DNA of 59,024 nucleotides. It comes from Octopus bimaculoides (Eukaryota). Of this stretch, positions 195 through 54,058 are shown one piece after another. Made by a program: the position numbers and the translations under genes. The stretch lies in the NCBI RefSeq assembly GCF_001194135.2, contig NC_069008.1, positions 15,561,817 to 15,620,840 on the forward strand, given 5' to 3'. Below the pieces are notes generated by a model. It was not told the origin of the DNA. It saw only the letters and a program-made list of their open reading frames with translations, and did not search any database. Each line of letters starts with the position of its first letter. Position 1 is the first letter of the stretch.

Positions 195-600
195 TCCATC
201 ACTAGAAATAGCAACCCAGCTCTGAGTAAATGACGGACATCACTCATCCAGAACCAGAAATAGCAGCCAAATCTCGCACAAATCAAGGACATCCATCATT
301 CATAAAACATAGAAGAGACACAAAGAATCGACGCGCCAAAAACCGAACGTCTACAGAATTAAAAACATTGAATACCTTCATTGTTTGATACTTACGGAAA
401 TGTTTCATAAGAGATAGAGTTGTTATATATATATGTGTATCTGGTAGTTGAGAAATTACATTATAACAATTATTAGTGTATTATCAACTGATTCAGAGAA
501 ATTCATGGTCAGGACATTTAACAGGTTAACAACATAAAGTAGGAAGATCGATCACTGCGCATGCGTAGCTTCTCTCCTGAAATGTTTTAGTCTAATTAAC
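195..600 (-). promoter_or_regulatory. ZNF promoter/non-coding exon-1 cassette P1 (serves a gene left of the window)
   Basis: One of nine copies of a ~350-400 bp block. TGCGCATGCG at 556-565; minus-strand donor GTAAGTA (tacttac) at 389-395. Confidence 0.6.
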
Positions 601-799
601 TCCCTTTATTTATGTGTGTATATTATATACACACATATATATATATATATATATATATATATATGCTTATATTACTTATTGTATATTCCATATTCTATAT
701 CCCACATTAATTTTACAAGAATATAGTTGGAACTCTTTTAAACAAAATAATATATTCCTCTACACACAAAACTCCTTTTTTTTTGTATTTACTTTTAGT

Positions 800-1024
800 C
801 ACATATATGCATATATATACATGTTTGTGTGTCTGTTTGTCCCCCCCCAACATCACTTGAAAACCGATGGCGGTGTTTGCGTCCCCGTTATATAGAGGTT
901 CGGCAAACGACATCGATTGAATAAGTACTAGGCTTACAAAGAATAAGTCCTGGGGTCGATTTGCTTGACTAAAGGTGGTGCTCCAGCATGGCCGCAGTGA
1001 AATGACTGAAACAAGTAAAAGAGA
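800..1024 (+). mobile_element. SINE family A, 3' half
   Basis: Matches the tail (…aataagtactaggcttacaaagaataagtcctggggtcgatttg…gactgaaacaagtaaaagag) of the full copies at 15694, 20551, 28294 and 29025. Confidence 0.85.
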
Positions 1025-1489
1025 GTTATTGTTGGGCCCCTCGATTATTAATAATATCTGGCACAAGTTACCACCCTTTGTATCGTCCGACATCTTTGCT
1101 TATATTCTCAAGTGCCCGTTTTCCGTATTTTATTTTTAGTATAAAATATTTAAAAATAGATGGATCTTGTTAAATTTTTGCATACTTCATTTATTTTGGA
1201 TATATTTCCCATTTTTGGAACTTTTTTGACAAGTAAGCGTCATTTTCTTGAAGAGGTGCGCTTGTAAAGAAGTCCCTTTCAACATACGGAAGTTTAAAAG
1301 GGCAAAAATTTGTTTAAATACTTCAAAACTTCTAGTTTCTACATCTACACTACCTTCACTTCAAAACTTCCCCCAGAATTCTCATGGGGTGACACAGAAA
1401 TTTCCTATTTTATGATAGACGAAATGATAGATAGATAGAGGATACCTGCTTGTGGCACGTAGTCTGTGTATAGCCTTGTTGGTCCTCCT

Positions 1490-2090
1490 TGAGTTAAGTG
1501 TATCTTGATATATGTGAGCGCTTTCGGACCTATAATCCTTCATTAGATGTTCCATGGTGATTATTGTAGGCGTTGATCAAAGGCTCCCAACGCAGTAAAT
1601 GAATTTCTAGCCCTCAAGTTCATTCCGGTGGTCGAGGCTGGCTGCCCTCCTTCTGATGAGATGGACCTCTGCACATCTCCCCCTTGCCATTATAAGGTTG
1701 GGGAAATCCCAATCAGTGTTGGATTATGACCTTGTGAAAAGTCTTCTTTCACTCTGATATGAAGCTATCGTTTAGTCAGTTCTACACAGGTTTCCCCACA
1801 AGTACAGGTTGTCTTGCATAACACCTGACTTTGAGAAAATAGCCAGACAATGTCCATTGGCTCGTTTGGCTTTGATGGCAAAGTGGATCGTTATACATCC
1901 ACTCCGTATCACAGTATAATTACTACATCAGCACAGACACGGCTATCAACTCATTCTACACATTCTCTCTCAATACTGGCCGACATCACCTTATTCATAA
2001 TGACTTATGAATACTTATGCCTAAGTTCTTCCTTTGGGGTCTCTTCTGTTTTGTACTTGGGGGTCATTGTTTATGAACACATTTGAGAAC
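1490..2090 (-). mobile_element. Degenerate Penelope-like element fragment (GIY-YIG endonuclease region)
   Basis: Minus strand around 1720-1830 gives SGV…TCTCGETCVELTKR*LHIRVKE, resembling the SGVVYxIxCxCGxxYVGxTxRxLxxRxxE motif. Stops and frameshifts present. Confidence 0.55.
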
Positions 2091-2474
2091 TTTACAATAT
2101 TCCTGTGCATGAAAAAGTCATAACAAACGTTATCGTGTGAAAAATTGAATGAGTGAAGCATTTAAAAGATAATAAACAATAAATATACTGTAATTAGGGG
2201 ATGCAATGTTCAAGAAAGAATAATGTGTAGGGTTGTCAGGAGGAGGAAAAGTTTTGGGCTAGGGGTCCTTACATCACTGAAGGGAAGGTGAAAATTACAG
2301 ACAAAACCAAAAACAATCTAAAAGATTTGGAAATAATTTAATTTCCATTGCATAAAACAGAGGAATATTAAAAATATACAGCAAACACAAAACTATAGGA
2401 ACTACCCTTTTCCTTTCTTCCCTGTATGAATACATTTGTGTCTTGTTAAGTCAAAAGTTTGAGAGAATGATTTA

Positions 2475-51194: not shown

Positions 51195-51718
51195 AATTAA
51201 TGCAACTACAAAAGGGAAAACAAAAGTTAGGTTTTCAGTATCCTTAGTAAATATAGGGTATCAAAGTGGAGCAACTTTCAGTATTTTCAGCCTAACCAAC
51301 TTCAATGACAGGAATGTCCTTTATACAATTAGATGTTAAGAAACAACATATTTTTGTGGTCCTTGACACCATGTGTCTTATCTTTACGCAATTTATCTGC
51401 AGATATGCCCATGTTTTGCTTAATTTTGTGTGACTATCATTGCAAACTAGATGAGATGTGTTTTATTGAACTTTTAACTGTCTCTTATGAAAATTGGTAT
51501 TTTGAATGTGCCCTTAATGTTTTGATTGTAAGGTTACATGGGTCAAGGTCACTTTTCATTAAGCATGGTCAAAAAACTGTAAAAAGAACTTCATGGTATG
51601 TATGCTCTTTATGGAGCCTTGCCATTACAAATCTGCATTTGCTTACTTTATAACTGTTGACGATTCTGAAAATGCTTTCCCAGCTGACAACTGGCTTGAG
51701 CATGTTTTGTATTTCAGA

Positions 51719-52135
51719 AATATGGCCAGTTGTGAGAGAAGAAAATGTAAAAACAGTCCCGAGGTCTTCTGCTTATTTCTGGATTAGGCAGTGAAACAAA
51801 ATCACAGATTTTGTGAAGAAAGCTTACTGTACTTCCTTAATTACTTCAGCATGAAACCGGATGACAAGACAAAGCTTTGGCGTCCTATATAGTGTGCAAA
51901 ATACGTGTTGAAACACTGAGCCAGTGACTGCTTCAAATACTAAAGCAGAAAGTTTCCAACTCTGTCTTCTGAGAAAAGTAAGGTTGGAGTGTTTGATGGG
52001 CCACCTGGCATTGAATGCTTTTGTTGGAGTTGTATCTGATTTCCTGAGAAACAGGAAACCATAAAATTATGAAAATCTTGTGCAGATCCTGTTGACCAGT
52101 TTTCGAGCACTGGGCTGCAACATGGATGTAACTGT
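51719..52135 (+). mobile_element. Chapaev-type (CMC) transposase remnant, internally deleted
   Basis: MASCERRKCKNSPEVFC…ITDFVKKAY…YFSMK.DDQDKAW.P..VCK.CV and LVQILLTSFRALGCNM across frameshifts. Confidence 0.6.
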
Positions 52136-52312
52136 GCAATAAACAACAATGTCAACTTCTATTTCTGGACAAATACTAATGTTAGTGTCCACTACGCTGT
52201 AGTTTTATTTGAAAGCTGTTACCCGTTGTGAAGACGTCAGTGTAGTTTATAAATATGTAAGCTTCACACGAGATTCTATGCTGTAAATTTTAAGAAATTA
52301 AAATGTTAAGTT

Positions 52313-52991
52313 CATCATCTTTTAATGTCTATTGTCCATGCTGGAATTAGTTGGATGGTTTGACCAGGGCTGGCAACTTGGGGAGCTGCAGTAGACCCTA
52401 GTCTGATTTGGTGTGGTTTCTGCTGTATGCCCTTCCTAGTGCCAACCACTTCACAGAGTGCACAGGGTGCTTTATATGGCACTGTGCAGCTGCTTTTATG
52501 AGGAATGGCCACAAGTGTTTTTCAGCACCACAGGGACATGTCTTAATACTTTTTTTTCTTTTCTTTTCTTTTTATTGCCCACAAGGGGCTAAACATAGAG
52601 GGGGCAAACAAGGACAGACAAAGGGATTAAGTCGATTACATCAATCCCAGTACGTAACTGGTACTTAATTTATCGACCCCGAAAGGATGAACGGCAAAGT
52701 CGACCTTGGCGGAATTTGAACTCAGAATGTAACGGCAGACGAAATACCGCTAAGCATTTCGCCCGGCGTGCTAATGTTTCTGCCAGCTCACCGTCTTAAT
52801 ACTTCTGTAATGGAGTGCAGATCTTGAGTTGAGCAAGTTATCAGAAATCTCATTCTTTCTCATTTCACTTGAATGGTTCTTCAGCACTTCATGCCATGTC
52901 TTTCTGGGTGTCCCACTTCTACATGTTCCATCTACTTTTAGAGATTAGCACTTCTTTATGTAGCTGTGAGATATACAGCTCAGTTGTTGAG
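52313..52991. mobile_element. Cassette-borne RTE 3' end (minus) with putative mini-exon 2 of ZNF-9 (52942-52991, plus)
   Basis: Reverse complement of 26790-27192. AG at 52940-41, GT at 52992-93, 96-nt intron to AG 53086-87. Confidence 0.6.
52552..52792 (-). mobile_element. SINE family C with 12-bp TSD
   Basis: gtcttaatactt at 52540-51 and 52793-804. Confidence 0.9.
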
Positions 52992-53538
52992 GTAAATGTT
53001 TATTTCTACAGATTATCTTAATAGAAACTAATCTGTATATTTTAGATAGTCTCTGTATCTTACACTGTTGTTTCTCTATAATTTCAGAACATCAGATGAC
53101 ATTGAAGTAACGGATGGCAAACCCCCAATATCTCTCCTGTTTTAAAGACTGAAGGAAAATATTATATGAAACAGATGTATCAGATTGTTTCTACAAATCT
53201 GTGTAGAATCCCTGTGAAACATTTACTCTGAAATAATATTATTAGCAAAATTTGTGAACATCACCAACTGGAGTATCAAGAAGAGGTGCCTGTGAACTGA
53301 TTAAAGTTGGATAAATTTATGTTAGTGTTGCTAAAGAAAGGTAACACTGGACAGAAATACAGCAGTAAAAGTGTTTGTAAGATATAAAGTACAAGAACAA
53401 AAGGAAGAAAAATGTATAAACTGAGATTTAAGAGAAGTATTGGAAGAGAGTAAGAAAATTATATAATTGATTTCTTCTCAATAGGATAAAAGACTGATGT
53501 TTGTGCAAAGTCTGTCTTTTAAAGAAATTAACCTAATT

Positions 53539-54058
53539 ATGCACAAACGTACTCATACAGGAAAGAAACCACATCAGTGTGGTATCTGTGGTAAAGCATT
53601 CTTTACAAGTAGTCACTTATCTAGACACAAGCGTATTCATACTGGTGAGAAACCATATCATTGTGATATCTGTGGTAAATCATTCTTTCAAAGTAATGCC
53701 ATAACTAAACACAAACGTATTCATACAGGAGAGAAACCATATCATTGTGATATCTGTGGTAAATCATTCTTTCAAAGTAATGCCATAACTAAACACAAAC
53801 GTATTCATACAGGAGAGAAACCGTATCATTGTGATGTCTGTGGTAAATCATTTTCAATTAATAGTGTCTTAACTGCACATAAACATACCCATGCGGGAGA
53901 GAGACAATATCACTGTGGTATCTGCTGAATCATTCTTTGAAACCACTACATTAACTACACACAAATATATTCATACTGGAGAAAAACCATATCACTGTGA
54001 TATCTGTGGTAAATCATTCTCTCGAAATAGTGATTTAAAGAAGCACAAACATATTCTT
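53539..54058 (+). pseudogene. ZNF-9, frameshifted and 3'-truncated C2H2 gene (4 intact fingers, then frameshift)
   Basis: TGC TGA at 53923-28 from a 2-nt deletion. Two more finger units in another frame, then the sequence breaks off into TA-rich DNA. Confidence 0.8.

Follow-up and report, generated by a model that had tools for sequence, protein, structure and literature searches.

This analysis concerns an array of zinc-finger (ZNF) genes on scaffold C28 of Octopus bimaculoides, studied through a stretch of 59,024 nt (C28:15561817-15620840, here called the window). The window contains nine stop-to-stop open reading frames (ORFs) built of C2H2 fingers, with 4 to 21 intact fingers each, as counted in a preliminary description of the same DNA. 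We propose, with a probability of roughly 70%, that the array as a whole is explained by a two-exon cassette comprising a promoter-like block (P-block), a noncoding exon 1, an intron 1, and a single finger exon. The copies share their layout, orientation, and spacing; donor and acceptor are selectively conserved; P-block and leader contrast in CpG content; and the signals of the cassette are restricted to ZNF-rich scaffolds. Because a shared 5′ structure is expected among tandem duplicates, we judge the cassette to be an ordinary case of gene structure shared within a lineage-specific poly-ZNF subfamily, and it opens no new question on its own.

Two larger samples were used besides the window: a contiguous region of 250 kb, in which the window is joined with 200 kb of flanking sequence (15.5% N), and the genome itself (2.34 Gb in 145,327 contigs). 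P-blocks were modeled with a profile hidden Markov model (HMM) built from 42 copies. Genome-wide matches were gathered at ≤3 mismatches for two patterns, an exon 1/donor 31-mer (donor pattern) and the acceptor 29-mer (acceptor pattern), with the reversed patterns as controls. The coordinates of individual features are collected in Table 1.

P-block as candidate promoter and first exon

The 5′ end of the proposed unit is a CpG-rich block of ∼375 nt, extending from ∼-245 to +130 around the donor, which would combine a promoter with a short noncoding exon 1 ending in ...TTTATGAAACATTTCC directly before GTAAGT. This donor was reported earlier at nine places in the window and is present at each of them, on the strand listed in Table 1. 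GTAAGT is also the most conserved hexamer of the P-block, being perfect in 95% of the 42 copies against a median of 35%, and 28 of the 29 evaluable copies detected via their upstream part alone retain it. The HMM retrieves exactly nine P-blocks from the window and no further degenerate copies. Their length had been given as 350 to 400 nt, which is too long: the copies retrieved by the HMM measure 300 to 345 nt, and the copy at 35718-35935 is truncated.

CpG content sets the P-block apart from the rest of the gene. The observed/expected ratio is 1.03 for the P-block, compared with 0.68 for the region and 0.31 for the acceptor/leader block. The consensus CpGs in the P-block persist in 56 to 79% of copies, with the highest value (79%) at the CpGs of a presumed NRF1-like site, whereas two CpGs of the noncoding leader are retained in 8 to 13% and are replaced by TG or CA. 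With a ratio near 1 and CpGs retained among paralogues, the P-block has the signature of a CpG island-like promoter. The contrast between the two blocks is the pattern that a germline-unmethylated promoter beside a methylated gene body would leave. Within the P-block, ACGCATGCGCA occurs in 27 of 42 copies and TATAA in 40 of 42, ACTTCC is also present, and CTCAACTACC is highly conserved. From these features we infer that the P-block houses the transcription start and that factors bind there.

The candidate exon 1 is noncoding, because its ATG has become ATA, ACG, GTG, or TTG in many copies that retain GTAAGT and because the frame opened by this ATG meets a stop after 11 codons. On the same grounds, a coding reading was ruled out for exon 1 and for the mini-exon discussed in the next section.

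An alternative is that the P-block is a conserved internal module, for example, a 5′ untranslated exon plus a regulatory region of the first intron, with transcription starting further upstream. Conservation on both sides of the donor would fit such a module, and head-to-head pairs of P-blocks, such as those with donors 10444- and 11465+, could share an upstream start region. We consider this alternative unlikely. Homology among paralogues starts sharply at ∼-245 (AAAGGGAGATAATTAG), with unrelated short interspersed nuclear elements (SINEs) and microsatellites upstream, so that each copy would need its own upstream exon; the P-block itself contains the CpG island-like signature as well as the NRF1-like, ETS-like, and TATAA motifs; and no conserved acceptor-like motif was found upstream of exon 1.

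Predicted intron 1, its acceptor, and the proposed second intron

Intron 1 of the proposed cassette would be variable (0.6 to 4 kb), occupied by copies of SINEs and by a 52-nt tandem repeat, and its 3′ end would form a nearly invariant module of a branch-point-like CTTAC, a polypyrimidine tract, and CAG. In six of the nine P-blocks, the conserved +130 nt is directly followed, where intron 1 begins, by 1 to 5 units of the 52-nt repeat (GATGTCTATAATTTGCGCGAGATTTAGCTGC...). The acceptor itself is a 29-mer, CTTACACTGTTGTTTCTCT(A/C)TAATTTCAG, that had been noted upstream of all nine ORFs; this is indeed the case, with seven exact copies, one with 1 mismatch, and one with 2. Its TTTCAG is kept in all 24 copies detected via the downstream leader alone. 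Perfect matches to the branch-point-like TCTTAC are seen in 88% of copies and to TTTCAG in 92%; together with GTAAGT, these signals rank highest in conservation among noncoding hexamers. Intron 1 thus displays the features of a U2-type GT-AG intron, namely, a GTAAGT donor, CTTAC at -29 to -25, a T-rich tract, and CAG. This conservation supports the view that the 29-mer behaves as a selected branch point, polypyrimidine tract, and AG, and GTAAGT as a selected donor, from which we infer that intron 1 is spliced.

The preliminary description had gone further and proposed a three-exon unit, in which exon 1 is followed by a mini-exon, a 96-nt intron, and the coding exon; the mini-exon would be 19 nt long (AACATCAGATGACATTGAC) and the intron of the GT-AG type. 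The promoter-like block, exon 1, intron 1, and a single coding exon are retained in our reading; the mini-exon and the 96-nt intron are not. Some copies do carry GTAAC after the 19 nt and ...TCTGTGGTAG ∼100 nt further on, both GT and AG are found in four or five genes of the window, and an extra intron would drop some of the several upstream ATGs in the long leader. Nevertheless, the donor dinucleotide in the nine window genes reads TT, GT, GT, GT, GT, TT, GC, AT, and GT (GT in 5 of 9), and in the 250-kb region it is GT in only 12 of 24 copies. The G of this donor sits on a decaying CpG, which reads CG in 3, TG in 9, and CA in 8 of 23 readable copies, and TGACGT and CGTAAC rank lowest in conservation among the hexamers of the block (12% perfect). 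At the other end, ∼70% of copies preserve the A of the proposed AG, and in one window gene the dinucleotide is GG. Intron length would range from ∼68 to 101 nt instead of being fixed at 96 nt, several copies have deletions of 8 to 17 nt within the mini-exon, and the proposed intron is as conserved as its flanks. The conserved GT and AG that mark a U2-type intron are therefore missing from the 96-nt segment, and we regard three exons per gene as decidedly unlikely. A genome search at ≤3 mismatches found no retrocopy carrying either the exon 1-exon 2 junction or a mini-exon junction, so that neither model is favored on this count. Two exons are supported for the cassette, and a small intron may be an optional feature of the GT-bearing copies.

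Pairing, genomic distribution, and evolution of the array

In the window, seven P-blocks pair with an ORF, and the intervening intron 1 measures 603 to 4,034 nt. The earlier statement that each block is oriented toward a ZNF ORF applies to these seven of the nine and fails for P395(-) and P35740(-). Likewise, the match of nine blocks with nine genes is coincidental: P395 belongs to a tenth gene situated left of the window, P35740 is orphaned, and two ORFs lack a P-block. Gene 5, one of these two, has acceptor, leader, and a conserved distal-intron segment (26970-27513), and its upstream sequence, gap-free for 4.6 kb, contains no P-block up to 31354. For gene 8, a 100-N gap (43445-43544) occupies the expected place of the P-block.

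The 250-kb region contains 31 donors, 25 acceptors, and 33 ZNF loci. For 26 of the 31 donors, the next ZNF locus lies ≤8 kb downstream on the same strand with no intervening donor, compared with 12.3 expected upon shuffling and a maximum of 22 in 2,000 shuffles; the recurring order on a single strand is P-block, acceptor, and ORF.

Genome-wide, the donor pattern gives 86 matches and the acceptor pattern 126, whereas the reversed controls give 0, which rules out chance. Matches to both are confined to C28, C29, C30, and small unplaced contigs. The full P-block has 161 first-look candidates in the genome, and its scored hits likewise fall only on C28, C29, C30, and unplaced contigs. As a control we used a SINE-like element of 289 nt that adjoins several P-blocks; it has 3,944 candidates, the best 40 of which are spread from C1 to C29. 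The preliminary description had pointed out that a P-block scattered over the genome independently of ZNF genes would be an ordinary repeat. With its confinement to three scaffolds and unplaced contigs and its predominant orientation toward ZNF loci, the P-block is not a dispersed repeat or transposable element.

It could still be functionless debris, either an ordinary repeat or neutral sequence carried along by segmental duplications. Such debris would explain P-blocks without a gene, and the mean pairwise divergence of P-blocks (0.25) does exceed that of leaders (0.20). We hold this to be very improbable given that P-blocks are limited to ZNF-rich scaffolds while the SINE control is found genome-wide, that their orientation toward ZNF ORFs far exceeds chance, and that conservation is site specific, as seen from GTAAGT and the retained CpGs.

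Several observations weigh against the two-exon cassette. Conservation stays at 0.7 to 0.8 for at least 130 nt past the donor, so that the end of exon 1 is marked by the hexamer only. The motifs ACGCATGCGCA, ACTTCC, TATAA, and CTCAACTACC are tentatively taken to be NRF1-like, ETS-like, TATA, and initiator (Inr)-like elements from their likeness to consensus sequences. The 29-mer could owe part of its uniformity to gene conversion. P-blocks are missing from two window ORFs, and in the 250-kb region 5 of the 31 P-blocks have no gene. Finally, outside this region at least 9 of 40 placed donors have an acceptor within 8 kb, a lower bound in which only acceptors with ≤3 mismatches among the matches listed are counted.

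As the last figure indicates, P-block and acceptor are only partly codistributed across the genome. C28:5.6-5.84 Mb has at least 19 acceptor variants (...TTTCTTTATTATTTCAG) and no P-block donor at ≤3 mismatches. At C28:12.37-12.51 and 15.0-15.25 Mb, ATA-variant donors occur with no acceptor among the matches listed (≤3 mismatches). A leader motif gives 63 matches, the majority of which lie at C28:15.26-15.70 and 16.13-16.17 Mb, C29:9.56 Mb, and C30:1.36-1.41 Mb. This indicates that the full cassette of the type found in the window marks a subfamily of roughly 50 to 65 genes.

The window includes 11 assembly gaps, and all of them fall outside the ZNF ORFs, P-blocks, and acceptor blocks. Intron 1 of genes 1, 2, 4, and 7 does contain gaps, and the intron lengths and pairings of these genes therefore hinge on scaffold joins. 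Genes 2 and 3 have head-to-head P-blocks, and the 10-N gap that lies between these (10902-10911) has the same ∼200 nt on both sides (93.8% identity). It represents either a pair of neighboring SINE copies or a contig overlap that the assembly left unresolved.

The array at C28:15.26-15.70 Mb consists of tandem and inverted poly-C2H2 genes that would descend from one ancestor and have kept its two-exon layout. Growth would have occurred by segmental duplication, and later exchange between copies, as in gene conversion, may have given promoter, leader, and fingers histories that are uncoupled from one another. Across 17 genes, the pairwise distances between P-blocks do not correlate with those between leader blocks (Mantel r of -0.02; P = 0.46). 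One neighboring pair of genes is a mosaic, with 79 to 85% identity in the P-block, 96 to 97% in distal intron 1, acceptor, and leader, and 80 to 89% in the fingers; its tract of ∼1.1 kb at 96 to 97% identity looks like a signature of gene conversion or recombination. The earlier notion that regulation is copied wholesale is not supported by the uncorrelated distances and the mosaic pair.

Between 35940 and 26692, the minus strand carries in succession the orphan P-block (donor 35740), the complete gene 6, and the promoterless gene 5, in which homology to the distal intron resumes at 27513. This order suggests unequal crossover or the duplication of an entire unit into intron 1 of gene 5.

All donors and acceptors of the cluster are interchangeable in sequence, and runs of genes on the same strand are common. 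A P-block might splice past its neighbor, as when the orphan at 35740 skips gene 6 and joins the acceptor of the 19-finger gene 5 at 26692; we assign this a low probability. If it were true, promoter and exon choice would be made at the level of the cluster, the genes would not be strictly autonomous, and gene conversion would keep the splice modules compatible.

Table 1. Coordinates of predicted cassette parts and associated elements (window positions unless a scaffold or region is named)
Feature	Position	Strand	Details
Tenth gene (left of window), P-block	266..607	-	Donor G 395; HMM E 2.9e-97
Tenth gene, acceptor	C28:15559727-55		Paired with donor 395(-)
Tenth gene, ORF	157282-159449 (250-kb-region coordinates)		
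Gene 1, P-block	5869..6202	-	Donor G 5984; HMM hit
Gene 1, intron 1	5984->3586	-	2,399 nt, 1,014 of them N
Gene 1, acceptor and 5′ leader	3272..3666	-	AG ends 3586; HMM E 1.6e-111; exact 29-mer
Gene 1, ORF	2475..3272	-	ATG 3260; 6 intact fingers; first fingers damaged; ends inside finger
Gene 2, P-block	10335..10657	-	Donor G 10444; intron 1 1,344 nt; head-to-head with gene 3 P-block
Gene 2, acceptor and 5′ leader	8772..9189	-	AG ends 9101; HMM E 3.7e-123
Gene 2, ORF	7686..8816	-	ATG 8768; 12 fingers; ancestral MEGSEK leader intact; zf-C2H2 families only
Gene 3, P-block	11251..11565	+	Donor G 11465; intron 1 777 nt, gap-free; followed by 52-nt tandem repeat
Gene 3, acceptor and 5′ leader	12152..12539	+	AG ends 12241; HMM E 1.8e-102
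Gene 3, ORF	12493..13536	+	ATG 12541; 11 fingers; canonical C-terminus
Gene 4, P-block	21404..21744	-	Donor G 21534; intron 1 1,582 nt (37 N)
Gene 4, acceptor	19605..20042	-	AG ends 19953
Gene 4, ORF	18771..19832	-	12 fingers; ends inside finger
Gene 5, acceptor and leader	26339..26756	-	AG ends 26692; ancestral ATG followed by stop
Gene 5, ORF	24635..26308	-	19 fingers; canonical C-terminus; first ATG 26272, inside helix of former finger 1
Gene 6, P-block	33172..33465	-	Donor G 33293; intron 1 603 nt, gap-free
Gene 6, acceptor and leader	32351..32781	-	AG ends 32691; 29-mer 32691-32719 with 2 mismatches
Gene 6, ORF	31354-32286	-	10 fingers; in-frame stop, then out-of-frame fingers down to 31014
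Orphan P-block	35718..35935	-	Intact GTAAGT, G 35740; homology stops ∼10 nt past donor; next downstream feature is gene 6 P-block
Gene 7, P-block	43036..43364	-	Donor G 43160; intron 1 1,251 nt (30 N)
Gene 7, acceptor and leader	41575..41998	-	AG ends 41910; 29-mer 41910-41938 with 1 mismatch
Gene 7, ORF	39681..41546	-	21 fingers; canonical C-terminus
Gene 8, acceptor and leader	43552..43992	+	AG ends 43641; begins right after 100-N gap 43445-43544
Gene 8, ORF	44009..44992	+	10 fingers; ancestral ATG changed to ATA; 2-nt deletion in finger 1
Gene 9, P-block	48843..49142	+	Donor G 49054; intron 1 4,034 nt, gap-free
Gene 9, acceptor and leader	52998..53434	+	AG ends 53087; HMM E 1.9e-134
Gene 9, ORF	53485-53928	+	4 fingers; stops inside finger; out-of-frame fingers to 54061, then microsatellite and gap
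52-nt tandem repeat	11539-11812; 237-308, 10314-10368, 21332-21442, 33146-33211, 42963-43067		
SINE-like repeat of ∼290 nt	10705-10901, 10912-11121, 21870-22158, 33559-33819, 50218-50518		
Mosaic neighboring pair, ∼1.1-kb tract	C28:15425564-15426638 vs 15432745-15433793		96-97% identical; distal intron 1, acceptor, leader

Proteins, related systems, and neighboring elements

The encoded proteins belong to the Krueppel-type poly-C2H2 zinc-finger class. The ORFs tested have 3 to 16 TGE(K/R)P linkers each and fingers of the form C-x2-C-x12-H-x3-H, and four proteins match PF00096 (E values of 1e-64 to 1e-104) and PF13465 (1e-92 to 1e-184). For these four proteins, the 25 best families listed per protein did not include KRAB (PF01352) at E ≤0.01. 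The absence of an effector domain that had been described is borne out, in that only families of the zf-C2H2 type were found and no KRAB, SCAN, or BTB domain. Whole-protein searches are dominated by generic vertebrate and insect ZNFs, a search with the N-terminal part only gave no candidate, and three proteins of the window had no exact counterpart among the records searched.

Each protein would be encoded by one large terminal exon, consisting of a leader of ∼390 nt, an ATG in good context (AATAATGG), an N-terminal tail of ∼25 amino acids, and 4 to 21 fingers. The proximal leader (the ∼160 nt before each ATG, e.g., 12380-12540) and the tail can be aligned, in register, to roughly two finger units (nhmmer E values of 6e-6 to 1e-3). 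This alignment indicates that leader and start codon lie in decayed former fingers. The 5′ leader (e.g., 12242-12540) has several conserved upstream ATGs, including ATG-TAA and a minimal upstream ORF, ATG-TTT-TAA (ACCATGTTTTAAAG, ∼90% conserved). These ATGs could reflect translational control or a further unrecognized intron.

Several copies of the array are decaying. The canonical C-terminus ends genes 2, 3, 5, 7, and 8; ORFs 1, 4, 6, and 9 stop inside a finger, with out-of-frame fingers following ORFs 6 and 9. The ancestral MExSEK start is kept only in genes 1 to 3. A deletion of ∼330 nt has deprived gene 4 of its leader and start region as well as the first half of finger 1, and as a result the fingers begin 121 nt past the acceptor. 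In genes 5 to 9, the ancestral ATG is lost or out of frame, and finger 1 is deleted (gene 5) or disrupted (genes 6 to 9). The causes of these losses in genes 4 to 9 are an ATG-to-ATA change, the 2-nt deletion, a stop, and the 330-nt deletion. All of genes 4 to 9 have ...LIMH(K)R... inside the former first finger, the M of which is the first in-frame ATG in genes 4, 5, 7, and 8; genes 6 and 9 have an earlier one. Several ORFs with an altered start among genes 4 to 9 still hold 10 to 21 intact fingers.

Lineage-specific C2H2 expansion in cephalopods has been documented (PMC9068888) and discussed (PMC10547256), and the clustering of these expansions is established (PMC9068888; PMC10547256; PMC13218726). 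Our literature search found no description of a shared promoter/exon 1/acceptor cassette. The closest parallel is provided by KRAB-ZNF clusters (e.g., human chromosome 19), which are likewise tandem and inverted arrays of recently duplicated poly-C2H2 genes, with the fingers in one large terminal exon, TGEKP linkers, short upstream exons, a CpG island-like promoter, variable finger numbers, and many decaying copies. The octopus genes share the single terminal finger exon and the tandem clustering, with uninterrupted finger ORFs and 33 ZNF loci in 250 kb. However, they lack an effector domain and are supported as two-exon genes, and whereas the KRAB-A/B exons encode the N-terminal KRAB domain, the octopus upstream exon has no conserved ORF and is noncoding in our reading. 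FiNZ-ZNFs of cyprinid fish (PMC10547256) and ZAD-ZNFs of insects are also fast-expanding, clustered subfamilies in which a shared nonfinger module is copied with each duplicate. In those families the module is a protein domain, whereas the octopus module is noncoding (candidate promoter, exon 1, 3′ splice site, and leader) and the protein keeps only the ∼25-amino-acid tail that would derive from a decayed finger.

The clustered protocadherins of vertebrates have variable first exons, each with its own promoter, that are spliced to constant exons. The octopus array resembles them in having many near-identical modules of candidate promoter plus donor in one cluster. Unlike protocadherin variable exons, each octopus unit has its own acceptor and coding exon and is a full gene duplicate, and no constant exons were seen. 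The protocadherin diversity of cephalopods likewise results from full gene duplication (PMC9068888).

In practical terms, the cassette offers a sequence-only annotation rule, consisting of P-block, GTAAGT, a CTTAC...TTTCAG acceptor, and one finger exon. This rule helps to mend gene models in a gap-rich region and sorts promoter-bearing genes from orphans and decaying copies. A single promoter architecture across ∼50 to 65 paralogues could explain coordinated expression. The analysis also shows separate histories for promoter, leader, and finger array, and it points to a finger-only product with no effector, its leader built from decayed fingers.

A repeat scan of the window picks up chiefly the 84-nt period of the fingers. 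No match to Rfam and no tRNA emerged when the window was scanned for them. The SINE-like repeat of ∼290 nt, which also has no tRNA or Rfam match, adjoins several units or lies in their intron 1, and its best 40 genome copies are 92 to 94% identical. Non-ZNF ORFs of 226 to 228 amino acids with no Pfam match lie at 55515-57493(-). These ORFs share 85% identity with "hypothetical" proteins that occur as tandem repeats in Octopus vulgaris (OX597841.1:7.95 Mb), and a neighboring non-ZNF ORF shares 79% with an O. bimaculoides entry, which places the DNA in the genus Octopus. The O. vulgaris locus, examined over 21 kb, has no ZNF within 10 kb, no P-block, and no acceptor, and it is therefore probably a paralogue. 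Fragments of Mariner/Tc1-type transposases are found at 6986-7402(+) and 57740-58222(-), with matches to PF01359 (E value of 9e-11) and to helix-turn-helix-type families.

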